The position numbers and the translations under genes are program-made. From positions 62,001-126,000 of the forward strand of contig OU015567.1 of the NCBI GenBank assembly GCA_907165135.1: 64,000 bases of DNA. The letters run 5' to 3'. A model generated the notes under the pieces. That model did not search any database. It saw nothing but the letters and a program-made list of their open reading frames with translations, and was not told the DNA's origin. Every line of letters starts with the position of its first letter. The stretch's first letter is position 1. This document shows, piece by piece, positions 1,239 through 33,860 of this stretch. This stretch comes from Oikopleura dioica (taxonomy: Eukaryota > Animalia > Chordata).

Positions 1239-1545
1239 TGATACGGAAGCGGCTGTCCTGCAATTTATGCGCGTTCTCTAACTCTAGAATGCCAAGCTAA
1301 AAATGACGAGAATCAAATTTTTTAATTTGCGTGGTTTTATTTGTGATTTGAATGAGAAAAAGAAGCACGGCGCGCGGTTAAATACGGCGAGATTGAATCA
1401 ATGTTTTTGAACGAGCGGTTGTTTTTGAGCTTTTGAAAAGCTTTTGTTTTTGAAATCAAGGAAGAAAGCCCAAGGCCATCAAAGCAGTTTTTCTTTCGGG
1501 AAATCCTTACGGATCGTATTCTTGCCGATTTAGAGCTGAGCTTGT

Positions 1546-2752
1546 TGATATCCTTAGGGAACAACGCCTCAAGCCAAATAAAAAATTTTTATTTCACGGC
1601 CAAATATTTACGCCAATTCGGTTCTACGTTAGTTTAAATTTGTCTTGTCAGCTTGGTATCACCAAATTGATCAGACATATTTGCAAAAATCATTTCACGA
1701 TATTCTACTTAAAATGAAAAGATGGTCAGTTTTAACGAGCCAGATTGACCCAAAATTGTCTTATCATCATGTCATCTCCTTACGATCTATACGTTCTATC
1801 ATTGGAATGCTCATATGCTCTCATCATAATACTTTTCTAGTGCAATCTGATGTCAATTCATCCAAAAATATGCTATTTGCAAAACTGCATGTTTAATCTA
1901 TTTATCGATATTTCTTATCATTGCTTTGCGATTTTTAAAGTTCGATTATTGACAGTGCATACGATTCAACTTCTACAACAAGAAAGTCGTCAACATCTTC
2001 TTCAACAACAACTACTCCAACGAGCCGATAAACCGTCGTATCATCTCGGTGCCGTGGGGTCGGACAAACTCTATGTCAGGGCGTCCGCTTGTCGCAAATT
2101 AGCTCATCCGTAAGAGAAGATACGGTGCGAACCGCGACAGTAACTTCCCCCGGGTATGTTCCTTGGAATTTGCTTCTTCTGTGATTTCAATTTTGATAAA
2201 TTCATTTTATAAAATCCTGACCAAATTTTATTCAATTTATTTGTTAAAATTTTGTATATATTCTTTTTACTTTTCTCATCCTTTTTTTATTTCAACCATA
2301 ATTAACAGTCACTTCTACGGTCACATAGTGAGAAGTTTAAGTGGCTGTTATTATTTTCTGCTTTTTATTTTGAAAAAATTAATTTGCGTTTTATCTCGTC
2401 ACGCGCGGCGCCGGCTCCCGAAACCTTTGAAAATAACTTGCTTGGCAAGTTCGATCAGCTCGTCTTCCGAAAAGAAATCGATCCGAAAGGATTTCCCGCA
2501 AGAAAAACCGCTAAAGAAAGCCACGGGCTCTCTTCCTTGTTTTCAAAAGAAAAATTGCTTTTCAAAAACAACCGCTTGTTCAAAAACACTGATCAAATCT
2601 CGCTGCTATTTAACCCCGCGTCGCGCCTTTTTCAGTCATTCAAATCACAAATAAAACCACGCAAATTTAAAATTTGATTCTCGTTATTTTGGCTTGGCAT
2701 TCTAGAGTTAGAGATCGAGCAAAATTCTTGCAGGACAGCCGCTTCCGTATCA
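1546..2752 (+). repeat. 5' LTR of A1 (1207 bp)
   Basis: Direct repeat of 8370-9572 with TG...CA termini. Confidence 0.97.
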
Positions 2753-3862
2753 TGGTGACCCCAACTCCTGAAGAGGTACTGTACAAGAGTCATGCGCTTT
2801 TTTCGGTTTCCCCAAATCAGATGATTAGATTAGGAATGAGAAATTTCGAATTCAATTTGATTAATTCTACAATTAAAGACAAATTACAGCGTGCAAAATG
2901 GATTTTTGAAAAATCTCTGGCGGAAAATAAACCCGAAAACAAAGAGGACCTCGAGGCTCAATTTTCGCGCCTTTCAAGCTCTTTTGTTTATAATTCATGC
3001 GAGCCGGAATTTCTTAGGGAATACGGGGAAGATCTTTATGGATTTGAATCAGCTGAGGAAAAATTGTCTTTTTTGACGTCTGTTTTTGGCGACGAATCGC
3101 CCGAGGAAAAGATCCTTCGAAACAAAGAAAAAATGGAAAATCTCACCCGAAAGAGCGAGAACAATGAAAAATTCGAGATATTTTTGTCACGTGTTAAAAC
3201 TGTCGCGGAGAAAATTACGCAGAAACCGGACGCGAGAGAATACATTATCGACGCGCAATTTAGAAAATCGCTCACGCCTGAACTGCAGAATTTTCTTCGC
3301 GATCAGTGTATGCTTGAAAAAACACCCGAGGAAATATCCAAATTTCTTGACAAAAGAAAACGAAATGAGACTATCCCCAAAATTGCCCAAATCGAAATTG
3401 ACGCGAAACTTGGCTCGTTTTTCCAGTCGACTTCCGACTTAATTTCAAAATCGACAATGTCCTTTGAGGATCAAATTTCTCAATTGAAAATTGAACAGAA
3501 AAAATCAGAAGAGGCGGCGGAAAAACGGGCGAGTGCGCTTCATGATCAAATTGAAAAACTAACGGCAACAATTGCAAAATTAGAAGTTGATCGCCGCAAC
3601 GATCAGAGTTTGACGCGTCAAAATAACCAGCAACGGAATTTTCAAAGTCGAAATTTGGGCGCGCCAAACCCGGATCGGCCAAGGCCTCGACGATTTTGTG
3701 GATTTTGTAACACAGACACTCATTTTAGATCGCATTGCCCCTTTATTACCTGTCATTTTTGTCAGAAAAAAAGGCCACATGAAAACAGCTTGCCCCGATA
3801 ATCCCGATAGAATTTACAGAGCTGCTCGGGTCGAGGGAGAAGAAACTTCAAAAAACGAGTAA
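2752..3862 (+). CDS. gag: Gag of A1 (two CCHC knuckles; one apparent +1 A indel at 3766-3772)
   Basis: ORF from ATG 2752 (MVTPTPEEV...) with CGFCNTDTHFRSHC. Removing one A from the 7-A run restores CHFCQKKGHMKTAC and a stop at 3860-3862. Confidence 0.9.
2753..2762 (+). promoter_or_regulatory. Primer-binding site, tRNA-Trp type (TGGTGACCCC)
   Basis: Directly abuts the 5' LTR. Matches the first 10 nt of the classical tRNA-Trp PBS TGGTGACCCCGACGTGA. Confidence 0.8.
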
Positions 3863-3897
3863 ATGGAACTGAAAGCCCTGGTCAGGCACCAGTTCCA
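3850..3897 (+). promoter_or_regulatory. -1 ribosomal frameshift signal (A AAA AAC plus downstream stem)
   Basis: Heptamer 3850-3856 is in X XXY YYZ phase with gag and pol is in the -1 frame. Stem TGGAACTG (3864-3871)/CAGTTCCA (3890-3897). Confidence 0.8.
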
Positions 3898-6800
3898 AGG
3901 ACTTGTTCAATTTTTCGCATTGGATTACAATATTTTGTAGAAATGACAGTTTTTTCAAAAAAAATAAAAATGCTCGTCGATTCTGGCTCCCAACTTAACC
4001 TTTTGCCCAAATCATTTATTCCCGATAATGTTAAAATTCAAGCCCCTGATATTTTTGCTAAAAATTACGGTGGAGGAAGTATTGAAATTCTTGGTTTTGT
4101 CGAATGTGATTTTCATGTTAAAACGGAAAAATGGGGTAAATCGCGATTTTATATTGTAAATGACAATTGTCAGGCAATTCTCGGTTCGGAAGCACTTAAA
4201 TCTAATGAAATTATGATCAATCTTCATCGAAATCGTCTAGTTAAATCTGGTCCTATAGAGCGAATGGCGAATTTATGTAATAATGCATCAAAAAGCCCAA
4301 CAGTTAATAACATTGAGCAAGACAGTTTTTATGCCGTTTCTGAGCAAACTTACACATTTCGAGGCAAAAGTGAGCAAATTATCGATTTAAAAATTCCTCA
4401 TTTGAACAGATCAATGAATCTTTTTTTAGAAGAAAGCCAGCTTAAAAATTCGAAGCTAGAGTTAATAGAATCATTCCAGAGAGTTGATCCCGAGAATCCA
4501 TTCTTTCGTATTCTTGTTATAAATCCCCTGAATTCTACAGTTAAAATTCCTGCTGGCACGGCCTTTGCAAAACTAGCGGAAATAGCTGAGATCGCCCAAA
4601 TCAAGCCCTCAAAAAAAGATCTTAATTTTCTTCTTTCGCGGTTAAAAATAGGCAATATATCGAAAAAGAATAAGCCGGTACTTTTTGGTCTTCTTGCTAT
4701 ATACACCCATTTATTTCAAGACGAGGACGACAATTTGCCTGTTTCGAACCTTGAAAAATTTTCGATTGAACTAGAGACTGATCGCCCGATTTGTAGCAAT
4801 ATGTACAGAACGCCATATGCCTTGCGGGGAATAATGACCGGTACTACTACCTCCTACCTTGGGCAAGACATGATAATGCGAATTAATTCACCCTATAATA
4901 GCCCCGCGTTACTCGTAAGGAAAAAGAATGGTACATTCAGATTATGTATTGATTACAGGAAATTAAATTCGTTTACGCTCCAGCAGCATCATCCGTTGCA
5001 ACAAATTGAAGACGTTTTAGGGTATTTAGAAAATAGCATTATTTTTTCTTGTGTTGATTTGCGAAAAGGATTTCATCAGTGCCTCGTAGATGAGAAATCG
5101 CGAGAAAAACTAGCTTTTTCGACTGAAGACGGACAATTTACTTGGAAAAGGCTTCCAATGGGTCTCAAAAATGCCCCTATTCATTTCGCAAAATGCATGG
5201 ATGTTATTTTACGAGACACGCCGAAAACTCAAATTTGCGCTTATCTTGACGATTTAGTGGTCCATTCAAGAACGGAAGAAGAACATTTAGCCAATTTACG
5301 TAAATTATTTCAAATTTTAGACCAAAATAATTTACGGATTAACATCGACAAAGCGAGTTTTTTTGAGCGAAAAGCATGCATTTTGGGTTTTGAAATTTTT
5401 GAAGGGAGAATACGGCCATCACAGGACAAGATCGAAGCGGTTAAAAATCTGTCTATTCCGAGAAACCGTGAGGAGGCACAATCACTTTTCGGACTTCTTT
5501 CGCAGCACAGAAAATTTATTAAAAATTTTGCACCCCTTGGAGTAGAAATTTCAAAAACGTACAGAGGGTCATTTTGTTGGACAAAAGAGGCGACGATTTC
5601 ACTCGAAAAGCTCAAAAGTATCATCTGCCATAACGCTCTTGAGCTCAAAATCCCCCCACTAAATGACGGTGTTTTCGTACTCGAGACAGACGCATCTAAT
5701 CATAGTTTTGGTGGAGTTCTTTATCTTTGCGCGGAGCGAAATAAAAATCACCATCATTCTCATAATTGCCTACAACCGATAGCTTACCACTCGCTTAATT
5801 TTACGCCGGCACAACAGAAATACGGGACATTGGAAAAAGAACTTTATAGTGGGAAGACATGTATGGAACGATGGAGGGCTTATCTTGCTTATGTCGATTT
5901 TCTTTGGATTACTGATAACTCTTGTGTTAAATACGCTCAATCCTTCAAGACAAATAATTTAAAAATTCAAAGATGGTTTACGGAGCTTCAGGGCTTTTCA
6001 TTTCGAATTGAACAGAGGAAAACTCATCAAATGAAAATAAGTGATTGCCTTAGTCGTAATACATTAAATTGTTCGATCAATCAAATAAAATTTACCCCTG
6101 AATCATTCGTAGAGTTTCAAAAATCTGACCCAGTATTATCACAAGTTAGACGTTTCGTTAGTATTGATAGATGGCCAAATAACCCACCAAGCGAGCTTTA
6201 CCCATTCTTTTTACGTAGACCTGACCTTGAAATCCTTGGGTCTGGTGAGCTAGCTATAAATTCTCCAGCCTATCAAAAAAAGATTTTGCGTCCCCGAGGC
6301 ATTGACAGAGACAATTTGCAGCGAATATCATGATCACTCTCATTTCGGAGTCGATATTACAACCGAAAAAATTTCTAGAAAGTATTTTTGGCCGGGATTA
6401 AAAAATACAGTCGCGAGCTTTATAAAATCATGTCACAAATGTCAAATTTCAAAACCAAATCTACAGCCTAACAAACCTCCTTTAGGCAAATCTGAAACAC
6501 CTAGCGGCCCTTTTGAAATTTTGTACTTTGATTTAATTGGCCCACTTCAAGAAACTGATTTTGGTCATAAATATATAATGGTGGTTATTGACGGTTTTAG
6601 CAAAAAAGTTTACGCGGAGCCCCTATCGTGCAAAAAATCGGATTATTTACTGCAAAAATTCCGGAGCGTATTATTTAGAAATCCAAAATTTCCAAAATAT
6701 ATGGTTTTAGATAACGCGAAGGAACACGTTCTGATTGAAAAATTTTTGAAAGAAAATAAAATTGGTGTACATTATATTCCCCCGCGTCATCCCCAGTCTA

Positions 6801-8319
6801 ACGGGCAAGTTGAAAACGTCAATAGAACCATAAAAGCCAGGCTCAGGGCTCGTTCAAATTGGGTGAATTGGGATATTTTTCTGTTTGAAATTGTTCACGA
6901 AATAAACAGTAGTTTACACACAGTACTCGGAACAACCCCATTTTGTGTAGAAACTGGTATAAAAAGCAGTCATCATTTTCAAGACCCTTATTGGCGAACA
7001 TACGGAGATAAAATCGACGTAGACTTTGAGAAAATTCGTGCGAAAATTGAACAAGAAAAGCAAAAAAGAATGACCAAATTTGAAAATCCCCGTTTCAAAG
7101 AATACAATTTAGGCGATAAAGTTCTTATTAAAAATTTCCGCGAAAAATTTCCTCCGTTTTTAGGTCCTTATGAAGTGACGTTTAAATCCCCGAGTGGTCT
7201 GTGGTACGCTGTTAAAAATGATAAGGACGAATTTAGGCGACATGCGGAACATATGAAAAGTTATTCTCAGCGAAATTCAATTTTAGAGACGAATAATGAT
7301 GTTGAAAAATACTCCAAGATTGTGACAAAGCCACAAGAGAACGATCTCGAGTTTTTTGAATTTTTTTCCGAAAACTGTCTTTTTTCGAAGGATTCCCTCG
7401 GCCGGTTTGCTGAAAATTCCCCCACAGAAAAAGAATCGGAAAAAGCGCATGAACCTTTCTCCTCCGAAAGGTCAGATCAGTCTTTACAATCGGAACCTTA
7501 TCGGGAGCGGTCTAGTTCTTCTTCAGAACCAGAAAATTTTTCATCCTCATCGACTCTTTTGATAGAAATGCCAGTACCGAATATAAATGGTAATCAAGAA
7601 CGTGATTTGAATCAAGTAGGAAATGGATCAGACATTGTGCTTGATTCCGAGAAATCAAGTTCTGATTCTGAGCTCTCTGTTAATTTGACATCGTACGATA
7701 AATTGCCCGAAATTGATCCGCTAGTTGCTTTAAAACGTAGAAGGGAAAGATCTGATGATTCCGTTGTCGAGCGTAAAATTGCTAAATTCACAGTTGAAAA
7801 TAATTTGGAAAACATGTCAATTTTAATTAAAATGGAAAATCATGATCTTGACTTTTTCGAACATCTTAATGATAAATGGAAAAATACAGACGACATAGAG
7901 GAGACCTATGTTGAAAATGGTATATTTATCAAACTGAACGAATTAACAAGAGACTCTCTTTTATTCATTCTTTTTAAAATGAATCAGGAATTTGATCTTG
8001 AGGAATCAAGGGCAAAACTTCAGATAAAAGTGAAGGAAACTATTCGTAGAGAATATCCGAATTGGCGTAAATCGAGAAACGGACAACTCCTTTTTTTTTT
8101 GCGGTCTTTAGAGTGCAAAAAGAGCGAACGTTGTACGAACTAACTGTCCCCGAGCTAAAAACTGTATGCGCATTTTATGATTTACCCTGTAAATTTCGAA
8201 ACTGCTCAAAAACAATTTTACAGGCATCTATCGAAACAGAACTGCTTAAAAAATTTCCAAATCATCCAATGCGTAAAAATGTTCTTGTTTTTCTTCCGGA
8301 CTTTGAAACTGAAATATAA
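3850..8319 (+). CDS. pol: Pol of A1: protease, RT, RNase H, integrase and long C-terminal extension (ORF pieces 3943-6333, 6302-8143, 8113-8319)
   Basis: Protease LVDSGS; RT LCIDYRKLN and YLDD; RNase H VLETDAS; IN HHCC zinc finger, D,D,E core and GPY motif. The two breaks lie in A7 and T-run homopolymers and are open in copy A2. Confidence 0.95.
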
Positions 8320-8369
8320 AAAAAGATGGGCGATAAAGATGCTCGTTTGGGACCCATGGAAGGTCACAG

Positions 8370-9572
8370 TGATATCCTTAGGGAACAACGCCTCAAGCCA
8401 AATAAAAAATTTTTATTTCACGGCCAAATATTTACGCCAATTCGGTTCTACGTTAGTTTAAATTTGTCTTGTCAGCTTGGTATCACCAAATTGATCAGAC
8501 ATATTTGCAAAAATCATTTCACGATATTCTACTTAAAATGAAAAGATGGTCAGTTTTAACGAGCCAGATTGACCCAAAATTGTCTTATCATCATGTCATC
8601 TCCTTACGATCTATACGTTCTATCATTGGAATGCTCATATGCTCTCATCATAATACTTTTCTAGTGCAATCTGATGTCAATTCATCCAAAAATATGCTAT
8701 TTGCAAAACTGCATGTTTAATCTATTTATCGATATTTCTTATCATTGCTTTGCGATTTTTAAAGTTCGATTATTGACAGTGCATACGATTCAACTTCTAC
8801 AACAAGAAAGTCGTCAACATCTTCTTCAACAACAACTACTCCAACGAGCCGATAAACCGTCGTATCATCTCGGTGCCGTGGGGTCGGACAAACTCTATGT
8901 CAGGGCGTCCGCTTGTCGCAAATTAGCTCATCCGTAAGAGAAGATACGGTGCGAACCGCGACAGTAACTTCCCCGGGTATGTTCCTTGGAATTTGCTTCT
9001 TCTGTGATTTCAATTTTGATAAATTCATTTTATAAAATCCTGACCAAATTTTATTCAATTTATTTGTTAAAATTTTGTATATATTCTTTTACTTTTCTCA
9101 TCCTTTTTTATTTCAACCATAATTAACAGTCACTTCTACGGTCACATAGTGAGAAGTTTAAGTGGCTGTTATTATTTTCTGCTTTTATTTTGAAAAAATT
9201 AATTTGCGTTTTATCTCGTCACGCGCGGCGCCGGCTCCCGAAACCTTTGAAAATAACTTGCTTGGCAAGTTCGATCAGCTCGTCTTCCGAAAAGAAATCG
9301 ATCCGAAAGGATTTCCCGCAAGAAAAACCGCTAAAGAAAGCCACGGGCTCTCTTCCTTGTTTTCAAAAGAAAAATTGCTTTTCAAAAACAACCGCTTGTT
9401 CAAAAACACTGATCAAATCTCGCTGCTATTTAACCCCGCGTCGCGCCTTTTTCAGTCATTCAAATCACAAATAAAACCACGCAAATTTAAAATTTGATTC
9501 TCGTTATTTTGGCTTGGCATTCTAGAGTTAGAGATCGAGCAAAATTCTTGCAGGACAGCCGCTTCCGTATCA
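8370..9572 (+). repeat. 3' LTR of A1 (1203 bp)
   Basis: Direct repeat of 1546-2752. Confidence 0.97.
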
Positions 9573-10578
9573 CTTGTCGAGCTTGCCGAGCAAGTTATGA
9601 TCGTTTATCTTTTCGAGCCGGCGCCGCGTGTGAAGAGTTCATAAAACGCAAATTATAATTTTTGATAAAAATAAACAAAGAATAAATTTACAGTCATTTA
9701 AACTTCTCACTATGTGACCGTAGAAATGACTGTAAAATAAAAACGAATAAAAGAAATAAAGAATATGTACAAAATAAGAAATAAATATTTAAACTTAAAT
9801 TTGGTCAGGATTCTAGTTAAAATATTTTTTTCGAATTTAAAGAATAGAAGAAATCCAAGGAACGTACCCGGGGAGAGTTACTGTCGCGGTTCACATCGTA
9901 TCTTCTCTTACGACTCGCTACTTTGCGACAAGCGGGCCTTCTGACATAGAAAAGGACCCGTTCCCACGGCATCGCGAGTGATACGGCGATATATCGGTTC
10001 GTTGAAGTAGTAGAAGTTGTTAAGAGCGTTGTAGGCGTCCTCGTTGTTGAAATTGAATCGTTAGCTGCACGGTCAATAATTGAACTGTAAAATCGCAAGA
10101 CGTGATAATAAAAAGATCGAATATTAAAACGAAGCACGGTATTGCGAGGTACTATTTGTTTGATGAAATGACGTCGAATTGCACTAGAAAAGTCAGAAAC
10201 AAATTAAAATTTTTCGAAGTATGCGTACATACACATTAATCCTAGACAGAACCCTTAATTAATTTCCGACCCGTTGATTATGATGAGAGCATGTGAGCAT
10301 TCCAATGAAAGATAGAAAAGACCAAAAGAATAAGATAATGAGATGATAACGAATTGATGTTTTGGGTCAGTCTGGCTCGTTAAAACTGACCGTCTTTTTT
10401 ATCGTGTTTAGAAAACTACCGTGAAATGATTTTTTACGAAAAAACTGAGAAATCAATTTGGTGATACCAAGCTGATAAAACAGATTTTATAACCATGTAG
10501 ACCCGAACTTGCGTAAATCTTTGGCCGTGAAAAAGAAGAGTTTGATTTTGTTTGAGGCGTTGTTCCCTAAGGATATCA

Positions 10579-12116: not shown

Positions 12117-13249
12117 TGATGCCAATTACTCTAATTTATGACTCTCTAATCTAACTGCGTCTTGCAAAGGATGAGGCCTTAAAATACGAAACGTGGCTTT
12201 ATTATTTTGGTTATGAAGAGAGTGAAATTTCAATACAAATTTTTCCGAATTGCAAATTTTGCAGGTGCAAATATTTCCAAATAAGGCATTTCGCGCATTT
12301 CGCGCATATGTTTTTCTTTCCAATAATGACGCGGCGCTTTCGCGCCATTGTTATTTTCTTTTCATCAAATTGTTCGTAATCGCCACGCTCGTAATTATTG
12401 TTTTTTCTTGGTCAAATTTAATTTAAAATCATATCAAGAGATCAACTTCCCACTATGTGGCCATATCACTCTTGATAGAATTTTTTATCAATTTTAATTT
12501 TACTTGGTCCAAGTCCGTTTCCATAATCGTTGTCAGTCCATTGCGTCGTCGTTGTCGTCGTTGTAGTAGCTGGAGGTGTCGCCGCCATCGTTGAAGCTGC
12601 AGTTTTGTCGGTTTTGAGGAAAATGGTCAGTAGTCCTAAAGCGAGCCAAAAAAGTGTTCAATCAATTTTGCCTACCAGGAGCACTTACAGACAGCGCCAT
12701 CCCGCGGGTCACGGGGTCACACTGTCAAGCCGCAGGAGCGGAACTCAGCTAGAGGATGATAATTCATGCAACAGCTCCGTTGAAATCATAGAAGAGAGCC
12801 AATTGAAGTATTTTCCTATAAGCAGAATAATGCATTTCCAAAGCAGTCCGAGTCGTTGTTGATATCAAGGAAGAGACGAATTGTTTCATCAAAAATAATT
12901 ACCAGTCAGAAAGAATAAATTGAACATTAGAAAGTTAAATAAAACCGCCGAAACGGGTGGCTAAGGTGCCTTCAGAGAATGTTAAATAACGCGTACGTTA
13001 TAAATGAGAAATATAGATTTTGATGAACTCATGCTATCCAAAGATTTGGCTCCATAAATCTTCAGTTCGTTTAACTAGTGATTTTCATGCAAAATCAACC
13101 TTATTGGCGAAATTCGGGCCGTGAGTGGAAGGATTCAATTTTTATCTTTTATGTTCTTTTTCGCTATTCTTATCAGTATGACCCGTTGTGGGTATCTTTT
13201 TTTATTATTATAATTTGGAGCTTCTTTTACGAAAAAGAACTATTGAATC

Positions 13250-18902: not shown

Positions 18903-19959
18903 GATGCCAATTACTCTAATTTATGACTCTCTAATCTAAGTGCGTCTTGCAAAGGATGAGGCCTTAAAATACGAAACGTGGCTTTATTATTTTGGTTATG
19001 AAGAGAGTGAAATTTCAATACAAATTTTTCCGAATTGCAAATTTTGCAGGTGCAAATATTTCCAAATAAGGCATTTCGCGCATTTCGCGCATATGTTTTT
19101 CTTTCCAATAATGACGCGGCGCTTTCGCGCCATTGTTATTTTCTTTTCATCAAATTGTTCGTAATCGCCACGCTCGTAATTATTGTTTTTTCTTGGTCAA
19201 ATTTAATTTAAAATCATATCAAGAGATCAACTTCCCACTATGTGGCCATATCACTCTTGATAGAATTTTTTATCAATTTTAATTTTACTTGGTCCAAGTC
19301 CGTTTCCATAATCGTTGTCAGTCCATTGCGTCGTCGTTGTCGTCGTTGTAGTAGCTGGAGGTGTCGCCGCCATCGTTGAAGCTGCAGTTTTGTCGGTTTT
19401 GAGGAAAATGGTCAGTAGTCCTAAAGCGAGCCAAAAAGTGTTCAATCAATTTTGCCTACCAGGAGCACTTACAGACAGCGCCATCCCGCGGGTCACGGGG
19501 TCACACTGTCAAGCCGCAGGAGCGGAACTCAGCTAGAGGATGATAATTCATGCAACAGCTCCGTTGAAATCATAGAAGAGAGCCAATTGAAGTATTTTCC
19601 TATAAGCAGAATAATGCATTTCCAAAGCAGTCCGAGTCGTTGTTGATATCAAGGAAGAGACGAATTGTTTCATCAAAAATAATTACCAGTCAGAAAGAAT
19701 AAATTGAACATTAGAAAGTTAAATAAAACCGCCGAAACGGGTGGCTAAGGTGCCTTCAGAGAATGTTAAATAACGCGTACGTTATAAATGAGAAATATAG
19801 ATTTTGATGAACTCATGCTATCCAAAGATTTGGCTCCATAAATCTTCAGTTCGTTTAACTAGTGATTTTCATGCAAAATCAACCTAATTGGCGAAATTCG
19901 GGCCGTGAGTGGAAGGATTCAATTTTTATCTTTTATGTTCTTTTTCGCTATTCTTATCA

Positions 19960-20293: not shown

Positions 20294-21081
20294 TAATATC
20301 GATACGGCAGAAGAACATAAAAATAAAAATTGAATTATCCTTCAATCACGGCCAAATTACGCTAACTCGGATAGATTTTTGAATCTTTCACAAATCGAAT
20401 GTAAAACTTGAAATCTTGAGCCGATTTCATGAATCGCCAGCATGAGTTCATCATAATCCCTCTTATTCTCTGTAGCGTACGCGCTATTTCACTTCATTTT
20501 AGGCACATTAGCCAACCGTCTTCGGGCGTTAAAATCTCACTCTTTTAGGAACGCATGAATATTCAACCCTTTTCTATTGGAAACAACTCTCAATTCATTT
20601 TAGTTCTAAATTCTCTTTCTAGTTCAAATTAATCCCTTCTTATTTTGCTGTTTAAAACGATTCTCAAGCTTCAACCTGGAAAAGCTAAAAAACGACGGAT
20701 TCTTCCTTGATTTCACCCTGGACCATTTGTATGAATATTCATCCCCAGCTGAGTTCCGCTTTTGCGGCTTGACAGTGTGACCCCGTGCTCCGCGGGATGG
20801 CGCTGTCAGTAACTGCTCCTGGTAGGCGTTTTTGTTTGAACCCTTTTTGGCTCGATTAAGGACGAATGGCTATCATCTTTAAAAACGACAAAACTGCACG
20901 TTCTACAACGACGACAACTGCTCCATCAACGAAAACGACAACGAACGGACTGACAACGATTTTGGACATGGACTGATAACGGCTTCTTATCAAAAGTGAT
21001 ACGGCAACATAGTTGGAAGTTGATCTCTTGATAAGTCAAAATGATGATATGGGAATCGGCTGCTTCTTGCGTAACAATCAC

Positions 21082-24000
21082 TGATACCTTCCGAATAAAT
21101 AACAAAAATCAAAAAAAAAAATACAAAAAAATGAATAAAAAATGTTGCTCAAATATAAAAGCCCATAGTGCATGTTAATCAAAGAAAAATCAATAAGAGC
21201 CATATTGATTTTCCCTTGGGCCCTTAACTAAGTGGGTAAAGTTTTTGCTAATTTAATCAAAGGAAAATTAAGGGTTCAAGGGCTTTTACAAAATAATTAC
21301 TGGTTAGGGATTTTAGTTCGCATATTCTGCACGTACGCGTGTATCACATCAATTTATTATTGCATGAAAAGGATGATCGTTAAAACGTTAAAAATCACAT
21401 ATATCTATGCCTTTATTTACAGTGTTGATTGTAAATAAAAGTATAAGAAATTCTTAGGAAAATTTTATCTGAAAAAATATTTGTTTCTGTCATAAAAATC
21501 AACGAACCGCTGGGGAACGACTGCTGCTTTTCTTCCTTGATTTCGACGACGTTGGGACCTATCATCCTTACATGCTTCGCTTCCACGAAAGTGGCTGTTC
21601 GCAAAGTAGCCTGGAGCAGAATATCTCAATATGGCCAACCGCGAACATAAGCGCGACATGGTAATCAAAACTGTCGAGCCCGTTACGGCTGCTTTTAAAT
21701 TTTCTGACCAAAAAACAAAGATGGCAACTACACAACGAGCCGATGGCAGAGACAACGACGACTTCTACTTCTACAACACTTTGGACAACGATAAAAACGC
21801 TTGGAACGACTACGATTTGCTTAACGGCTTTGGAAACCCAGAAATACTTTCACAATCGGTGGGTCACATAGTGAGAAAGCCGGTTTTGAGAGTGATTTCA
21901 AGAAAATGCGCCAGCTGTGGCAAAGAAAAATACAAAAAAAAATGAAATTTGAAAAAGACGAAAATTATGTAACCACAATCATTGGGGTTACATAACGAAG
22001 ATTATGAAAATTATATAATGGCTATTTTGCCTTTGGATAAATTGAAAATGAAAAATTTCATCAGAAAGTTACATAATGCGAAAGACAATTGACGTAAATG
22101 GCGCCATGACTTCTTAACAATGGAAATCCAGCGCAAACCGGTTGGCAAAAACTTGACCTTCTCCATTTTCAAAAATTGATCCTCATTCTTGATCTTTCAA
22201 TAAATCACCAACAGCAAATAAAAATCTCGGAAAAAGCTCTAGAATTATTTATTCCACCGATTTCTGGGGGTAAATTTGTGGTCGAGTGTGATGCAAGCGA
22301 TCGGAGTTTCGGAGGAGTTCTATATTTATGCGCGGAAAAGATTCCATCTGAAAACCATGTTCATAATTCCGGCTGTCTACGGCCATGCGCATATCACAGT
22401 GGTAATTTTTCTGACACACAGATCAAGTATACGATTTTTGAAAAAGAAATTTTGGCTTCTAGAATTTGCATAAATAAGTGGAGCGTCTATCTGAAATATA
22501 CAAATTTTGATCTTATAACAGACAATGGAAATATGAAATATCTCAATTCGCTAAAAACAAATAATTCCCGTATTCAAAGATGGATAGCTGAGCTTATGAC
22601 CTTTAATTATAAAATTCTCCAGAAACCATCAAGTGCGCTTAAAATTTCAGATTATCTCTCAAGATACCCGGGAAAAACCGAAAAAGCGGCAATTTCTCTT
22701 ATCAAAATTGATACCAAAAATTTTATTGAGCTTCAAAACTTGACCCGATCTTACGGCTTATAAGACAATACGTCGGAATTGACAGATGGCCGAATAATCC
22801 GACGGAAAAAATTTCATATTATTTATTGCACCGGAAAAATTTATGTTTTCTCGAATCAGGGAGCTTATCCTAAGGGAAGGGAATCTAGACAAATTCTGCG
22901 TTCCAGAAGTTTTGCGTTCTGACCTTATGCGTGAATATCATGAAGGGGGTCACTCTGGAATAGAAATTACATTTTCAAAATTAAATCAAAAGTATTTTTG
23001 GGAAAAAATGCGCCAAGATGTAGTCGAGTTTATTAGATCATGCAAATACTGTCAATTAAATAAACCAAACTGTAATCCGAATAAAGCCGCCCCAAAGACA
23101 TTTCCATCTCCAACAGGGCCGTATCAACAAATGGGCTTTGATATGATCGGTCCTCTTCGGCCAACGGACAGTGGGAATATTTATATTTTTACTGCTATTG
23201 ATTTTTTCAGCAAAAAAAGCTTATGGGGTACCACTTAATTCTAAAAAATCAGAATATCTCCTCGATAAATTTAAGTCTATTCTTTTTTCAAACCCTTTCT
23301 TTCCCAAGTTGTTAATTTTCGATAACGCCCCTGAATTTTCAAAAATTCGTGAATTTTGTGCGGAAAATAATATTGAACTTAAAAACAGTCCACCAAGACA
23401 TCCAGCAACTAATGGTAGTGTCGAAAATTTTAATCGAACTCTTAAGAGCCGGCTTAAAGCCCGATGTCAGTTTAATAATTGGGACCGTTATCTTTCGGAA
23501 ACTCTTCACGAAATAAATAGTTCTAAGCATTCAGTCACAAAATTTTCTCCGTTTTCAATTGAAACAGGAATCGAGGTTCCACACTTTTTGAATGACCCCA
23601 ATTGGAGACAGTATAGGGATAAAATAAATATTGATTTTAAAGCAATTAAACACAATATTGATGAAGAAAAATCTCGGAGATGCGCAAGGCTCAAAAATGA
23701 AAAATTTCAAGAATACGCCCTCAATGAAAAAGTCTTGCTAAGAAATTTTCGATCAAACGACCCCCCATTTATTGGCCCCTACATAATTATTAATAAAACC
23801 CCTACGGTGTATTCTTGTAAAAATTTAGAGACAGGAAAAATTCTAATTCGCCACGCGAACGACTTAAGAAAATTTCATGAGCGCCAAGATAAAATCTCTC
23901 CAAAAATAGAGCATGATAATAATGAAATAGTAAGGGATGGGCACGAGGATAAAAATTCAATTGAGGGGTTTAGATATGTTGAGTTTTTCTCCGTCACAGC

Positions 24001-26380
24001 TGAAGAGCAATCGAAGTTAGAATTGCGTAAAGATTCATTTTCGGATTTAGAATCATCAATAACCGAATCGAGCTCCGATAGTTTAGACATTGAGGAATTC
24101 AAAAATTCTCTCGTTTTAAGGGATTACGAAAATTTAATTAATTTAAATATAATTGATATTTTTAAAGAGGCTTATCTCGAGGTTAAGGGAATCCGACAAA
24201 CTGATCAGGCCAATATTCAAAATGTAAGGGAAATCAGCGGGAAAGATGACATTTTCGACGAGACCTCAACGGAGGACCTGGAGATAGTAGCGGGTTCATC
24301 GGCAATATTACCTTGTAGAAATCAAACGGTTCGTCAGATTGAATTTTCGGGCGACTTAACATCATATGACAAACTTGATATAAGTGCTAATAGAAATGCA
24401 AAACGCGCGAGGGGAAGCTCTGGAGAATTGTCTGACATTCAAGATTTTAAAAGGCCCTTTTTTCACCCAAAAACAACAGATAAAACAGTACAAACTCGAC
24501 AACAAATCGATAGAACAATTTTAATGGACTCGGAAATAACGAACAGCTCCGTTCGATTACCAAAAACAAGAACAAACGAATTAATGAATGAAGCAGAAAT
24601 GCTTGATTTTGAAGGTTGCCAGATTGGAATAATTTTGGAAAACAAAAATGAAAATTTTTTTAACGAAGTTAGGCAGGGGTTGCATGATTTTAAAAAGAAT
24701 AAGAAAATCGGTAATGGGTTTATTCTGAAAATGTCTGAACTGCCGAAAGAAACATTGATATCGATCCTCGCTGATTTTGGCGAAACGCATTCTGCTTCAG
24801 ATAACAAATCCGAATTAGGTAATAAAGTGAAATTTTGGATTATCAAGAATCACAATAATTGGCAAAAATCAAGCTCGGGAGAGTTGCTTTTTCTAGCTAT
24901 TTTGCAAATAAAAAGAGAAACAACTCTTCCGCAGTTTTCTTTATACGAGCTCAAGTGTCTTTGCTCTTTTTATTCTCTTGAAAAAATTCCAAACTCATTT
25001 ATTAACAAAAAATCAAACATTCGTGAATTTATTATCGCTCAGTTTTCCTCTTTCTTTCCAAATCATCCGACAAAAAACGGTGAACTTGTTTTTTATCCGG
25101 ACACTTGAGCTCGTTCTAGGGCTTCAAATATTCGAAGGCAAAAGATGCTCATTTAAGACCCTGGCGTGGCCATGGTGATACCTTCCGAATAAATAACAAA
25201 AATCAAAAAAAAAAAAATACAAAAAAAAATGAATAAAAAATGTTGCTCAAATATAAAAGCCCATAGTGCATGTTAATCAAAGAAAAAATCAATAAGAGCC
25301 ATATTGATTTTCCCTTGGGCCCTTAACTAAGTGGGTAAAGTTTTTTGCTAATTTAATCAAAGGAAAATTAAGGGTTCAAGGGCTTTTACAAAATAATTAC
25401 TGGTTAGGGATTTTAGTTCGCATATTCTGCACGTACGCGTGTATCACATCAATTTATTATTGCATGAAAAGGATGATCGTTAAAACGTTAAAAATCACAT
25501 ATATCTATGCCTTTATTTACAGTGTTGATTGTAAATAAAAGTATAAGAAATTCTTAGGAAAATTTTATCTGAAAAAATATTTGTTTCTGTCATAAAAATC
25601 AACGAACCGCTGGGGAACGACTGCTGCTTTTCTTCCTTGATTTCGACGACGTTGGGACCTATCATCCTTACATGCTTCGCTTCCACGAAAGTGGCTGTTC
25701 GCAAAGTAGCCTGGAGCAGAATATCTCAATATGGCCAACCGCGAACATAAGCGCGACATGGTAATCAAAACTGTCGAGCCCGTTACGGCTGCTTTTTTAG
25801 TTTTTCTGACCAAAAAACAAAGATGGCAACTACACAACGAGCCGATGGCAGAGACAACGACGACTTCTACTTCTACAACACTTTGGACAACGATAAAAAC
25901 GCTTGGAACGACTACGATTTGCTTAACGGCTTTGGAAACCCAGAAATACTTTCACAATCGGTGGGTCACATAGTGAGAAAGCCGGTTTTGAGAGTGATTT
26001 CAAGAAAATGCGCCAGCTGTGGCAAAGAAAAATACAGAAAAAAATGAAATTTGAAAAAGACGAAAATTATGTAACCACAATCATTGGGGTTACATAACGA
26101 AGATTATGAAAATTATATAATGGCTATTTTGCCTTTGGATAAATTGAAAATGAAAAATTTCATCAGAAAGTTACATAATGCGAAAGACAATTGACGTAAA
26201 TGGCGCCATGACTTCTTAACAATGGAAATCCAGCGCAAACCGGTTGGCAAAAACTTGACCTTCTCCATTTTCAAAAATTGATCCTCATTCTTGATCTTTC
26301 AATAAATCACCAACAGCAAATAAATTTTTTAGTATTTTATAGCAAGAATCGTTTTGAGAAAATAAGCAGGAATCGTATCA
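21082..26380 (+). mobile_element. Internally deleted Ty3/gypsy element D, nested in LTR E
   Basis: 3' LTR 25176-26380 is complete. 5' LTR 21082-~22222 lacks its last ~56 bp and is fused to RNase H. TSD ATCAC at 21077-21081 and 26381-26385. Confidence 0.93.
22223..25108 (+). pseudogene. pol: Truncated pol of D (RNase H, integrase, C-terminal extension)
   Basis: VVECDAS RNase H; HEGGH...CKYC zinc finger; FDMIG/DNA/GSVENFN core; FIGPY. Gag, PR and RT are absent. Confidence 0.9.
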
Positions 26381-26640: not shown

Positions 26641-28989
26641 ACCATCGAAAAAAAAATTTTTTTTTTGATTTTTTTTCTGTTGGGTTTGAGAGGCTCAGAA
26701 TCAACCAAAATGACGCTCGGAAGACGGCAGAAACGCTGCAAATAAAATAAGGGCAAAAAACAAACTTTCAAAATTTTGACCTCGTTTTTGGGCAATTCAT
26801 GATAACAATGACCATCGAAAAAAATTTTTTGAATTTTTTTCTGTTGGGTTTGAGAGGCTCAGAATCAACCAAAATGACGCTCGGAAGACGGCAAAAACGC
26901 TGCAAATAAAATAAGGGCAAAAACAAACTTTCAAAATTTTGACCTCGTTTTTGGGCGATTCATGATAACAATGACCATCGAAAAAAATTTTTTGAATTTT
27001 TTCTGTTGGGTTTGAGAGGCTCAGAATCAACCAAAATGACGCTCGGAAGACGGCAAAAACGCTGCAAATAAAATAAGGGCAAAAAACGAACTTTCAAAAT
27101 TTTGACCTCGTTTTTGGGCGATTCATGATAACAATGACCATCGAAAAAAATTTTTTGAATTTTTTTCTGTTGGGTTTGAGAGGCTCAGAATCAACCAAAA
27201 TGACGCTCGGAAGACGGCAGAAACGCTGCAAATAAAATAAGGGCAAAAACAAACTTTCAAAATTTTGACCTCATTTTTGGGCGATTCATGATAACGATGA
27301 ACATCGAAAAAAATTTTTTGAATTTTTTCTGTTGGGTTTGAGAAGCTCAGAATCAACCAAAATGACGCTCGGAAGACGGCAGAAACGCTGCAAATAAAAT
27401 AAGGGCAAAAACGAACTTTCAAAATTTTGACCTCGTTTTTGGGCGATTCATGATAACGATGACCATCGAAAAAAATTTTTTGAATTTTTTCTGTTGGGTT
27501 TGAGAGGCTAAGAATCAATCAAAATGACGCTCGGAAGACGGCAAAAACGCTGCAAATAAAATAAGGGCAAAAACAAACTTTCAAAATTTTGACCTCGTTT
27601 TTGGGCGATTCATGATAACAATGACCATCGAAAAAAATTTTTTGAATTTTTTCTGTTGGGTTTGAGAGGCTCAGAATCAACCAAAATGACGCTCGGAAGA
27701 CGGCAAAAACGCTGCAAATAAAATAAGGGCAAAAAACAAACTTTCAAAATTTTGACCTCGTTTTTGGGCGATTCATGATAACAATGACCATCGAAAAAAA
27801 ATTTTTTTTTTGAATTTTTTCTGTTGGGTTTGAGAGGCTCAGAATCAACCAAAATGACGCTCGGAAGACGGCAAAAACGCTGCAAATAAAATAAGGGCAA
27901 AAAACGAACTTTCAAAATTTTGACCTCGTTTTTGGGCGATTCATGATAACAATGACCATCGAAAAAATTTTTTGAATTTTTTCTGTTGGGTTTGAGAGGC
28001 TCAGAATCAACCAAAATGACGCTCGGAAGACGGCAGAAACGCTGCAAATAAAATAAGGGCAAAAACAAACTTTCAAAATTTTGACCTCATTTTTGGGCGA
28101 TTCATGATAACGATGAACATCGAAAAAAAAATTTTTTTTTTGAATTTTTTTTCTGTTGGGTTTGAGAAGCTCAGAATCAACCAAAATGACGCTCGGAAGA
28201 CGGCAGAAACGCTGCAAATAAAATAAGGGCAAAAAACGAACTTTCAAAATTTTGACCTCGTTTTTGGGCGATTCATGATAACGATGACCATCGAAAAAAA
28301 AAATTTTTTTTTGAATTTTTTTTCTGTTGGGTTTGAGAGGCTAAGAATCAATCAAAATGACGCTCGGAAGACGGCAAAAACGCTGCAAATAAAATAAGGG
28401 CAAAAAACAAACTTTCAAAATTTTGACCTCGTTTTTGGGCGATTCATGATAACAATGACCATCGAAAAAATTTTTTGAATTTTTTCTGTTGGGTTTGAGA
28501 GGCTCAGAATCAACCAAAATGACGCTCGGAAGACGGCAAAAACGCTGCAAATAAAATAAGGGCAAAAAACGAACTTTCAAAATTTTGACCTCGTTTTTGG
28601 GCGATTCATGATAACAATGACCATCGAAAAAAATTTTTTGAATTTTTTCTGTTGGGTTTGAGAGGCTCAGAATCAACCAAAATGACGCTCGGAAGACGGC
28701 AAAAACGCTGCAAATAAAATAAGGGCAAAAACGAACTTTCAAAATTTTGACCTCGTTTTTGGGCGATTCATGATAACAATGACCATCGAAAAAAATTTTT
28801 TGAATTTTTTCTGTTGGGTTTGAGAGACTCAGAATCAACCAAAATGACGCTCGGAAGACGGCAGAAACGCTGCAAATAAAATAAGGGCAAAAAACAAACT
28901 TTCAAAATTTTGACCTCATTTTTGGGCGATTCATGATAACGATGAACATCGAAAAATTTTTTTGAATTTTTTCTGTTGGGTTTGAGAAG
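26641..28989 (+). repeat. ~165-bp satellite, block 4 (with ~820-bp 5-mer higher-order repeat)
   Basis: Variant GATGAACATCG at ~27296, 28112, 28941. Confidence 0.97.
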
Positions 28990-31498
28990 TGATATCCTTC
29001 GGGAACAACGCCTCAAGCAACACAAAAATTTATTTCACGGCCAAATATTTACGTCAATTCGGTTCTACGTTAGTTTAAATTTGTCTTGTCAGCTTGGTAT
29101 CACCAAATTGATCAGACATTTTTCCAAAAATCATTTCACGATATTCTTCTCAAAATGAAAAGATGGTCAGTTTTTACGAGCCAGATTGACCCAAAATTGT
29201 GTTATCATCATGTCATCTCTTTACGATTTCTACTTTTATCATTGGAATGCTCATATGCTCTCATCATAGTCAACGGGTCGGAAATTAATTAAGGGTTTAT
29301 TCAGTCTAGGATTAATGTGTATGTACGCATACTTTGGAAAAAATCTTAATTTGTTTCTGACTATTCTAGTGCGATCTGACGTCCATTCATCAAAAATATG
29401 CAATTCGCAAAACCGCATGTTTAATCTATTTATTGATATTTCTTATCATTGCTTTGCGATTTTAAAAGTTCGATTATTGACAGTTCATACGATTCAACTT
29501 CTACAACAAGATAGCCGTCAACACCTTCTTCAACAACAACTACTCCAACGAGCCGATAAACCGTCGTATCATCTCGGTGCCGTGGGGTCGGACAAACTCT
29601 ATGTCAGGGCGTCCGCTTGTCGCAAATTAGCTCATCCGTAAGAGAAGATACGGTGCGAACCGCGACAGTAACTTCCCCCGGGTATGTTCCTTGGAATTTG
29701 CTTCTTCTATGATTTCAATTTTGATAAATTTATTTTATAAAATCCTGACCAAATTTTATTCAATTTATTTGTTAAAATTTTGTACATATTCTTTTTCTTT
29801 TCTCATCCTTTTATATTTTTCAATCCTAATTAACAGTCACTTCTACGGTCACATAGTGAGAAGTTTTAGTGGCTGTTATTATTTTCTGCTTTTTATTATC
29901 AAAAAAAATTAATTTGCGTTTTATCTCGTCACGCGCGGCGCCGGCTTCAAAATCCTTTGAAAATAACTTGCTTGGCAAGTTCGACCAGCTCATCATCCGA
30001 AAAGAAATCGATCCGAAAGGATTTCCCGCAAGAAAAACCGCTAAAGAAAGCCACGGGCTCTCTTCCTTGTTTTCAAAAGAAAAATTGTTTTTCAAAAACA
30101 ACCGCTTGTTCAAAAACACTGATCAAATCTCGCTGCTATTTAACCCCGCGTCGCGCCTTTTTCAGTCATTCAAATCACAAATAAAACCACGCAAATTTAA
30201 AATTTGATTCTCGTTATTTTGGCTTGGCATTCTAGAGTTAGAGATCGAGCAAAATTCTTGCAGGACAGCCGCTTCCGTATCAAGCTAGTTTGCGACAAGC
30301 GGACGCACTGACAGAGAGTTTGTCCGACCCCACGGCACCGAGATGATACGACGGTTTATCGGCTCGTTGGAGTAGTTGTTGTTGAAGAAGATGTTGACGA
30401 CTTCCTTGTTGTAGAAGTTGAATCGTATGCACTGTCAATAATCGAACTTTAAAAATCGCAAAGCAATGATAAAAAATATCGATAAATAGATTAAACATGC
30501 AGTTTTGCAAATAGCATATTTTTGGATGAATTGACATCAGATTGCACTAGAAAAGTATTATGATGAGAGCATATGAGCATTCCAATGATAGAACGTATAG
30601 ATCGTAAGGAGATGACATGATGATAAGACAATTTTGGGTCAATCTGGCTCGTTAAAACTGACCATCTTTTCATTTTAAGTAGAATATCGTGAAATGATTT
30701 TTGCAAATATGTCTGATCAATTTGGTGATACCAAGCTGACAAGACAAATTTAAACTAACGTAGAACCGAATTGGCGTAAATATTTCGCCGTGAAATAAAA
30801 ATTTTTTATTTGGCTTGAGGCGTTGTTCCCTAAGGATATCATAGCTCATCCGTAAGAGAAGATACGGTGCGAACCGCGACAGTAACTTCCCCCGGGTATG
30901 TTCCTTGGAATTTGCTTCTTCTATGATTTCAATTTTGATAAATTTATTTTATAAAATCCTGACCAAATTTTATTCAATTTATTTGTTAAAATTTTGTACA
31001 TATTCTTTTTCTTTTCTCATCCTTTTATATTTTTCAATCCTAATTAACAGTCACTTCTACGGTCACATAGTGAGAAGTTTTAGTGGCTGTTATTATTTTC
31101 TGCTTTTTATTATCAAAAAAAAAATTAATTTGCGTTTTATCTCGTCACGCGCGGCGCCGGCTTCAAAATCCTTTGAAAATAACTTGCTTGGCAAGTTCGA
31201 CCAGCTCATCATCCGAAAAGAAATCGATCCGAAAGGATTTCCCGCAAGAAAAACCGCTAAAGAAAGCCACGGGCTCTTTTCCTTGTTTTCAAAAGAAAAA
31301 TTGTTTTTCAAAAACAACCGCTTGTTCAAAAACACTGATTGAATCTCGCTGCTATTTAACCCCGCGTCGCGCCTTTTTCCGGCATTCAAATCACAAATAA
31401 AACCACGCAAATTTTAAATTTGATTCTCGTTATTTTCGCTTGGCATTCTAGAGTTAGAGATCGAGCAAAATTCCTGCAGGACAGCCGCTTCCGTATCA
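28990..31498. mobile_element. Composite of two family-A solo LTRs: full LTR(+) 28990-30282, inverted 5' half 30283-30841, 3' half(+) 30842-31498
   Basis: Outer TSD AGAAG at 28985-28989 and 31499-31503. Inner duplication AGCTA (30283-30287)/TAGCT (30842-30846). Confidence 0.92.
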
Positions 31499-32769: not shown

Positions 32770-33860
32770 TGATACCGATTTGCTGCTCAAATGCTCTCTT
32801 AGCTAGAATTCTTGCAAAGAATGACGCCAAAATTTCAAAACGTGGCTGTATTATTTTGAGTATGGAGAGAGTGATTTTTCAAATTTTCAAATTTTCAATT
32901 CGCATTTCGCGCAGGTGCGTTTCTTTCCAAATAAGGCGCGGCGCATTTCGCGCCATGTTTTTCTTTCCAAATATGGTGAGCGCTTTTCGCGCAATTGTTT
33001 TTCTGTCAATCGAAATTCGCCGAAACAGCCACGTTCGCTTCGAAATTAATCCCAAGAAATAAATTTTATCAAAAAGTTCAACTTCCCACTATGTGGCCAT
33101 ATCCCTTTTTGATAGAATTTAATAAATTTTTACTAATACTTTTCCAAAGCCAGTTCCAATAATCGTTGTCAGTCCATTGCGTAGTCGTCGTTGTTGCCAG
33201 AGAAGTCGCCGCCATTGTTGAAGCTGCAATTCTGTCGGTTTTGAGGAGAGTGGTCAGCTTTCCTTAAGCGAGCCAGAAAAGTGTTCAATCAATTTTGCCT
33301 ACCTAGGAGTACTTACAGACAGCGCCATCCCGAGGAGCACGGGGTCACACTGTCAAGCCGCTTAAAGCGGAACTCAGCTAGAGGATGAAATCCATGCAAC
33401 AGCTCTGTTGTAGTAGTAGAAAATGCCGATCGATTTTTTATCGTCAAGAAGAATTGCCATCATCGTTTTGAAGACATAGAAGAGTCAGCTTGATTCATCA
33501 ATAATAATTACCAGTTCAAAAATTAAATAAAAGAAGTAGTGAGCACTAGAAAGAGTTAAATAAAGAACCGCCGAAACGGGTGGCTAATGTGCCTTTGATT
33601 TGTGAAATAACGCGTACGTTATGAGGGAAAAATAGAGATTTATGAATTCATGCAAGCATCCGAGATTTGGCTCCGAAAATCGTCGGAACATAAAACTGTG
33701 AAATTCATGCCTAATCAACCTAATTGGCGAAAATATTTATGTGACTGGGATATTCAATTTTTCATTTTTTTTCTTGTGTTCTTTCCTTTATTCGTATCAG
33801 TATGACCACTCATGGGTATCTTTTTTCGGAGCATCTTTTAAGGAAGAAACAAATTGAATA

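Follow-up and report, generated by a model that had tools for sequence, protein, structure and literature searches.

The long terminal repeats (LTRs) of a clade of Ty3/gypsy retrotransposons in the chordate Oikopleura dioica carry an RNA domain whose helices are kept through compensatory change and whose junction letters are fixed. The domain was analysed in a stretch of 64,000 nucleotides (nt) of contig OU015567.1 (GenBank assembly GCA_907165135.1, positions 62,001 to 126,000 of the forward strand), called the window below. It is described here from element A1 (1546-9572), whose 5' LTR (1546-2752, 1207 bp) holds a copy at 2052-2153. The domain is a three-way junction of 80-107 nt on the element sense strand, and its helix P1 ends directly before a sequence that resembles a splice donor. 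That the RNA structure is real can be stated with high confidence, as it is as well supported as comparison allows. For its function, a tentative reading from sequence is put forward: a cis-acting domain that would govern use of the adjoining donor, through access of the U1 small nuclear RNA (snRNA) or through factor binding.

A conserved three-way-junction fold

The domain runs in the order P1, one or two U, the P2 hairpin, CU, the P3 arm, the strand N-U-A-A-S-Y and the returning strand of P1. P1 consists of two parts of 3-4 bp, with a small 5' bulge between them in most lineages, and the P3 arm carries an inner hairpin. In the A1 5' LTR, the 5' strand of P1 (2052-2059) reads CCG, bulged U2055 and GGGG and pairs with CCCC-CGG at 2147-2153, the last base of which is position -1 of the donor-like site. 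U2060 precedes the P2 hairpin (2061-2087), in which CGGAC (2061-2065) pairs with GUCCG (2083-2087), and CU (2088-2089) follows it. The P3 arm (2090-2139) pairs UGUCGC (2090-2095) with GCGACA (2134-2139) around an internal loop (AAAUUAGC / GCGAACC) and an inner hairpin, CCGUA/UACGG (2108-2112 with 2121-2125). The junction strand between P3 and P1 is GUAACUU (2140-2146); across the family, the U-A-A of this strand is nearly invariant. The P2 loop is unconstrained across lineages (GNRA, UUCG, U-rich or long). The internal loop of P3, as AAAGUAGC / GC(G/A)AACC, is retained in the A, D, F, G and H lineages.

The likeness between lineage groups is not carried by primary sequence, since MAFFT was unable to align the groups, as the first-pass annotation of this DNA had held. 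Model-based alignment with covariance models, which span the 92-position non-coding motif only, was used between groups instead. A first model was built from lineages D and F alone and searched against the whole window with filters off. The 12 copies of the other lineages ranked top, at E 5.5e-6 to 0.041, and noise began at E 0.35 with a non-LTR match that has none of the motif's features. A second model was built from the 14 window copies and searched against the genome (64.3 Mb, 19 contigs). It found at least 150 motif places, all of them clustered at contig ends and on small contigs, where satellites sit. The A1 5' LTR copy scored 18.7 bits with the first model and 84.1 bits with the second.

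For a larger alignment, 42 genome representatives were fetched and aligned to the model, which gave 49 distinct sequences. Standard pairs are formed in 96.5% of cells, compared with 73.7% when partners are shuffled and 35-53% when every 3' partner is slid by 1-3 columns. Both sides have changed in 16 of the 20 pairs; by helix, this applies to 6 of 8 pairs in P1, 3 of 4 in P2 and 5 of 6 in P3. Relatedness can inflate counts of this kind, so states were rebuilt on a tree of 48 sequences. On this tree, 22 branches were found on which both sides of a pair changed from one standard pair to another. Random column re-pairings averaged 0.7 such same-branch double changes and never exceeded 4 in 2000 trials. 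The earlier claim that the stems covary is thus borne out, and it holds in an alignment larger than the one on which it was made. RNAalifold recovered the same three helices from the 49 sequences, with compensatory change in 12 of 16 predicted pairs, on an alignment already fitted to the model's structure and hence not fully independent of it.

The changes can be followed within groups of lineages. In the BCE group, P1 occurs as CUAG/CUAG, CUAG/CUGG and CCAG/CUGG, a route via a G-U intermediate, and also as CUCG/CGAG. P2 in the same group is CCGC/GCGG, CCGU/ACGG or CCUC/GAGG, and P3 is GACAG/CUGUC, GACAC/GUGUC or GAUAC/GUAUC. In the G group, P2 has gone from CCCU/AGGG to CCUU/AAGG and P1 has four forms. 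About 59 cells of the 49-sequence alignment hold G-U pairs, and only 13 are unpaired besides one recurrent U-U. Common G-U pairs together with few unpaired cells indicate that the fold belongs to the sense strand of the element.

Folding of single sequences adds little to this. Under minimum free energy (MFE) folding, A1, A0, B, C, D and G form the junction and F does so roughly; it was not obtained in locus L217 or in a longer segment around D. The folding energies are not significant by themselves (z -0.2 to -2.2), and the case for structure therefore rests on comparison alone.

The fold matches no family in Rfam. Release 15 gave no match at gathering score anywhere in the window, and when 14 loci from all lineages were searched at E <= 5, the motif itself was again without a match. 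The first-pass annotation had judged by eye that the fold does not fit hammerhead, HDV, twister or pistol cores, and this judgement stands. Its proposal of an undescribed cis-acting RNA fares well as far as RNA-level structure, compensatory conservation (which itself points to a cis-acting role) and the lack of an Rfam match are concerned. Self-cleavage, one of the activities it had suggested, is unsupported.

Copies in the window and in related elements

The window is made of satellite arrays with a 163-171-bp repeat that are interrupted by LTR retrotransposons. These elements have LTRs of 1.0-1.3 kb, 99-100% identical within pairs, and a TGG-type primer-binding site (PBS) directly after the 5' LTR, with TGGTGA adjoining the LTR end. 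The order of Pfam domains in pol is RVT_1, RT_RNaseH, Integrase_H2C2 and rve, which is the Ty3/gypsy arrangement. The LTR pair, the TGG PBS and the order of reverse transcriptase, RNase H and integrase thus identify the hosts of the motif as Ty3/gypsy LTR retrotransposons. In all lineages, the gag ATG spans the LTR/PBS junction (..TATCA|TGG..), as seen at 2750-2760, at 39490-39500 on the minus strand and at 2060-2070 of locus L083, so that the PBS lies within the gag reading frame.

Fourteen full copies of the motif, from seven LTR lineages, and one half copy are present in the window. All instances given by the first-pass annotation, which had marked 2052-2156 (positions 507-611 of the A1 5' LTR), were found in place, and every helix it listed can be read directly from the sequence. 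Element A1 has its second copy in the 3' LTR (8876-8980, plus strand), and element A2 carries copies in its 5' LTR (44402-44506, plus) and 3' LTR (51294-51399, plus). The solo LTR A0, 76% identical to A, holds a copy at 9864-9969 on the minus strand in which P1, P2 and the inner hairpin have all undergone compensatory change (among its helices, GGGA/UCCC and UCGUA/UACGA). A further A-type LTR, in a rearranged block (28988-31498), has a copy at 29580-29685 (plus). Both copies of element B are on the minus strand, at 12672-12752 (3' LTR) and 19456-19536 (5' LTR), as are those of element C at 33299-33381 (3' LTR) and 40026-40108 (5' LTR). The truncated LTR E has one at 20745-20825 (plus). All of these were matched by the covariance model that had been built from the remaining lineages, namely the deleted element D, with copies in its 5' LTR (21571-21664, plus) and 3' LTR (25671-25764, plus), and the solo LTR F (42911-43001, minus). 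The half copy, at 30810-30899 on the plus strand, consists of the 3' part of the motif only, lies at an LTR rearrangement breakpoint and scored 28.1 bits with the second model. The outer part of P1 is CUAG/CUGG in B, CUAG/CUAG in C, CCAG/CUGG in E and CUGG/CCAG in F; its inner part takes the forms GAGU/GCUC, GAGU/ACUC and GAGC/GCUC. P2 occurs as CCGC/GCGG, CCC-GAAA-GGG and CCAC-GAAA-GUGG.

The A1 reverse transcriptase was searched against the genome and its relatives fell into three tiers, a satellite-dwelling clade (49-100% identical) and dispersed clades at 38-43% and 32-33%. Every checked member of the satellite-dwelling clade carries the motif. Two near-clade members had no match among the matches listed; both were found to carry the motif, each with new compensatory variants. 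In ten loci of the two distant tiers, at least five of which hold both LTRs, no motif match was found at E <= 5 with filters off. The earlier statement that the motif is conserved in every LTR lineage is therefore true of the window and of the satellite-dwelling clade and fails for distant gypsy clades of the same genome.

Relatives were also sought outside this genome. The A1 Gag had no match in a look-up of public assemblies. Gag relatives 52-56% identical were found in a Logan contig and in contigs from marine metagenomes, and these contigs carry a more distant form of the motif, lineage H. In this lineage, P3 and its inner loop are retained, with GUCGG/CCGAC in place of GUCGC/GCGAC in one branch, the long junction strand is AGAACA, and P2 is reduced or shifted. 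The contigs begin at varying points of the LTR and most likely are DNA assemblies, so no start site can be derived from them. Four of the marine metagenome contigs (L085, L086, L087 and L088; 7.2-7.4 kb) are circularly permuted units running from the end of pol through one LTR and gag to the start of pol, which implies that related elements are common enough in plankton DNA to assemble. A loose pattern scan of metagenome contigs listed 80 loci, of which the model confirmed one (L165); the human-gut-metagenome loci L134, L163 and L170 were excluded from this confirmation. The motif is a clean marker for one satellite-targeting clade, and the covariance model finds every copy.

The donor-like site and its possible control

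Directly after P1, GU and a purine are found in all 49 distinct genome sequences and in five of six metagenome or Logan relatives; in L085/L086, 7 unpaired nt separate P1 from the GU. The base before GU is G, which makes G|GUR invariant across lineages. In A1, the site is GUAUGU at 2154-2159 (plus strand). The hexamers are GUAUGU and GUACGU in A, GUAGGC and GUAGGU in BCE, GUAAUC in D and F, GUGAGC and GUAAGC in G, and GUGAAU and GUAACU in H. The site is constant although the adjoining helix is completely changed between lineages, and in B-type copies a one-base deletion preserves both the pairing of P1 and GGUAGG. By eye, an extension of P1 over GUA is inconsistent between lineages. The 5' end of the host U1 snRNA is AUACUUACCUG; in a count made by eye, about six or more pairs with it are possible for every variant. 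The spliced-leader RNA of the host has the donor G|GUGAGA or G|GUAAGA. Because P1 ends at an invariant, U1-compatible G|GUR, the site is read as a splice donor or U1 landing site with the 3' strand of P1 on the exon side. A covarying RNA structure and a U1-complementary donor consensus at that structure, two of the marks of a structured donor domain, are both present. Among the functions suggested at first (self-cleavage, packaging or dimerisation, splice control), it is splice control alone that the sequence favours.

A possible intron end was found in most groups. The BCE, D, F, A0 and H-L087/L089 lineages have a pyrimidine-rich YAG 36-54 nt past the donor, a distance at which a very short intron would be plausible. 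In A1-type copies, 155 nt without any AG follow the donor, and the first AG past it, in UUAACAG (2302-2308 on the plus strand), is the candidate acceptor. At the candidate acceptor of the deleted element D, the 5' LTR reads UUUUAAAU (21700-21720) and the 3' LTR UUUUUUAGU (25800-25820); the relatives L040 and L044 carry the AG form there. CUGACCA was considered as a branch point and rejected, because it is present as its reverse complement in some sublineages and sits past the candidate acceptor. It lies at 2217-2223 in A1 and has become CUGGUCA in some BCE sublineages (L056 and L057, about 60 nt past the motif), a swap that looks like a DNA-level site and not an RNA signal.

How might such a domain work? 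It would form either a structured exon end or a landing site for U1, with P1 or a bound protein gating the donor. In this way, the domain could set the readiness of the donor in the element RNA. Control of the donor may balance a processed form against the unprocessed RNA that has to be reverse-transcribed if the LTR is to be handed on whole. A working donor at this site is part of this reading and shares its tentative standing.

Precedents for parts of such a scheme are available. In HIV-1 (human immunodeficiency virus type 1), a stem of the 5' leader holds the major splice donor, the packaging core has a three-way-junction form, and the donor structure is thought to balance spliced and unspliced (genomic) RNA (PMC4974535, PMC5192399). 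Both cases concern a retroelement RNA domain with a splice donor, here a predicted one, at or next to a helix junction. The two share no sequence or structural homology. The present motif is in the middle of the LTR, probably in U3, and not in the leader after the PBS; its donor would lie just outside the helix instead of inside it; and these elements are without env or accessory genes that require spliced mRNA. The Tor elements, Ty3/gypsy-like retroelements of O. dioica, share host species and superfamily with the elements studied here. The paper on them (PMC4402516) places their transcription starts within the 5' LTR, reports RNA splicing from GA donors near the start of gag for some Tor3a elements, and describes no LTR RNA structure. 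Compared by description only, they differ in having a GA donor near gag where a GU in the LTR is proposed here, and the elements studied here lack env.

Several observations weigh against the donor reading. P1 spans only the exon side of the donor, so any gating would be mild. GGUR could instead belong to a protein-binding site. The candidate acceptor is not conserved in place, and its short-distance form is missing in A1-type, most G-type and L085-type copies. Nor was a splicing footprint found: among about 90 sampled LTR copies, none precisely lacks the GU..AG segment.

The position of the motif in the LTR adds to these difficulties. Near the 3' end of the LTR, all lineages have an initiator-like TCAYTC followed by AAUAAA after 8-10 letters, and A and H further have a TATA-like box at a conserved distance of about 20 letters upstream of the initiator-like site. 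In A1, the candidate module occupies 2606-2655 on the plus strand, with the TATA-like box at 2606-2613, the initiator-like TCAGTCATTC at 2632-2641 and AAUAAA at 2650-2655. The same succession (TATA-like box, about 20 nt, TCATTC, 8 nt, AAUAAA, CCAC(G/C)) is also seen in L085 and L087-L089. The module probably serves as core promoter and poly(A) signal and marks the U3/R boundary. If so, R would be very short (about 40 nt), the leader would measure about 116 nt before the gag AUG (2752-2754, at the LTR/PBS junction), and the start would lie about 480 nt downstream of the motif. The arrangement suggests that the motif is in U3, that is, in the 3' untranslated region (UTR) of the full-length RNA, and would be read only near its 3' end. 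If transcription starts at the module, the donor falls in the 3' UTR, where it is difficult to see how it would be used. As a further acceptor, a pyrimidine-rich ..AG block in U5 was considered and rejected, since it is more simply a downstream element of the poly(A) site.

RNA reads gave the donor reading no help. Three bulk RNA runs labelled with the species and one plankton metatranscriptome, which holds 17% of the element's sequence words, were mapped to 1450-7400. Coverage by the bulk runs was near zero, with 2-3 partial reads in each. From the metatranscriptome came seven short contigs at a depth of about 2, none of them over 1848-2245. With almost no coverage, no joints, starts or pile-ups of read ends were seen. 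One metatranscriptome contig (2425-2789) runs from upstream of the TATA-like box into gag. If it is RNA, it argues for a start further upstream, but DNA or a join of k-mers across R could also account for it.

A different role in the element RNA is somewhat doubtful and yet the most serious rival: a platform for protein binding in packaging, dimerisation, nuclear export of unspliced RNA or the start of reverse transcription, probably acting from U3 and the 3' UTR. GGUR and the junction letters would then be protein contacts and not a used donor. Helices conserved only as helices, with a free P2 loop, are characteristic of a scaffold on which fixed junction letters are displayed. The retained internal loop of P3 fits this description, and the promoter module puts the motif in U3, the site of retroviral export and stability elements. 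Cis-acting structures or decoy donors that let unspliced RNA survive and exit the nucleus are known from the constitutive transport element of Mason-Pfizer monkey virus and the negative regulator of splicing of Rous sarcoma virus. They lie near the 3' end, which would agree with a motif placed in U3, and their folds and sequences are unlike those of the motif. For Ty3, extra RNA contacts are used in priming, and similar contacts are conceivable here because the match of the PBS to a tRNA end is short and lineage-dependent. What the platform leaves unexplained is a constant, U1-compatible GU and purine after P1 where all helices have changed. In addition, a Pfam search of Gag found no zinc knuckle or other family, and no covarying long-range partner of the motif was seen by eye.

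Much less probable is a new class of self-cleaving ribozyme, present in both LTRs of an autonomous animal retrotransposon and cutting at or next to the fixed junction letters. A three-way junction in an LTR with about ten fixed unpaired letters invites the comparison, as ribozyme-bearing LTRs exist in the form of the hammerheads of plant retrozymes, which likewise are three-way-junction RNAs of about 60-100 nt in both LTRs (PMC4918200). The resemblance, already drawn by the first-pass annotation, goes no further than analogy. The junction strands of the motif, U(U), CU and N-U-A-A-S-Y, measure 1-2, 2 and 6 nt, an order unlike the 7, 3 and 1 of the hammerhead. Its core letters, CUGANGA and GAAA, are absent as junction strands, and P1 has no conserved internal loop. 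No ribozyme family of Rfam matched at E <= 5, the HDV-like, twister, twister-sister, pistol, hatchet, hairpin and Varkud models included. Retrozymes are small and non-autonomous, unlike the autonomous Ty3/gypsy hosts of the motif, and it is not evident why an LTR element that has a promoter of its own should need a cut in the middle of the LTR. A likeness of UGACAGU to the substrate of the hairpin ribozyme and a kink-turn in P3 were also considered; in both cases the partner strands do not fit.

Very improbable is a role as leader exon, in which an LTR-borne donor RNA would be joined to other RNAs in trans, in the manner of a spliced leader (SL) RNA. O. dioica does trans-splice, and its published 40-nt leader (PMC6883708) has 49 exact copies in the genome, which marks the genome as that of O. 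dioica or of a very close cryptic species. The layout of its SL RNA, a short structured exon followed directly by G|GU(G/A)A (the host donor being G|GUGAGA or G|GUAAGA), is also that of the motif. Against the SL exon (L092, 1501-1540), the BCE-type upstream flank and 5' half of the motif (12740-12762, minus strand) share 22 of 39 ungapped letters, with UCAUCC, UGAGU and ACAG at equal spacing; this likeness, limited to one lineage, is taken as chance. The motif is not among the 49 leader copies, and its exon of 80-107 nt would be twice as long as any known leader. The SL RNA is of single-hairpin type, the sequence past its donor (the intron part) is unrelated to that of the motif, and its genes are dispersed and outside LTRs. 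No transcription start has been mapped upstream of the motif.

A DNA-level promoter block of the LTR, in which pairing is incidental and without RNA function, is strongly disfavoured and equally improbable: the motif probably lies upstream of the LTR core promoter and near blocks that resemble DNA sites (the ACGTACGCGT palindrome, and TGACCA swapped with its reverse complement), but such a block cannot explain the both-side changes in most pairs, the double changes on single branches, G-U pairs on one strand or helices kept while sequences diverge past alignment. The probability that remains beyond the donor reading and these four rivals is assigned to something else.

Neighbouring blocks and significance

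Other conserved blocks surround the motif in the LTR. A GGYCACAUAGUGRGAA block is conserved in most lineages (2319-2335; 33080-33100, minus strand; 21858-21875, plus strand; L089 580-596), and its small stem YCAC/GUGR covaries as UCAC/GUGA and CCAC/GUGG. GGTCA recurs just upstream of the 3' LTR, at the place expected for the polypurine tract. Between this block and the initiator-like site, repeated GC-rich hairpins, GCGCGAAAGCGC or GCGCGAAAUGCGC, with GNRA-like loops are found at 32900-33030 and 12290-12370 on the minus strand. The lineages B, C, D, F and G share a conserved palindrome, ACGTACGCGT, in the 5' half of the LTR (33590-33610, 13000-13020 and 43225-43245 on the minus strand; 21330-21350 on the plus strand; L083 808-820), and E has GCGTACGCGC. 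In the G lineage, TATAAAA follows the palindrome, which may be an enhancer or a second promoter. Outside the elements, a separate tandem repeat with units of 55-57 bp lies next to the last satellite array (56657-57343) and has a higher G+C content (0.44 in that 2-kb bin).

The motif is a new member of the cis-acting RNA structures of retroelements and is unusual both in its place, the middle of the LTR, and in its partner, an invariant donor-like site. New structured RNAs with good support are rare finds in animals, and rarer still in transposable elements with compensatory change of this extent. Dozens of natural variants in one small genome make the motif easy to probe. Expression of an element needs host RNA processing, and its self-copying needs unprocessed RNA. 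If the domain does gate a donor within the LTR, it would show how a retrotransposon handles this conflict in a compact, heavily spliced and trans-splicing genome.

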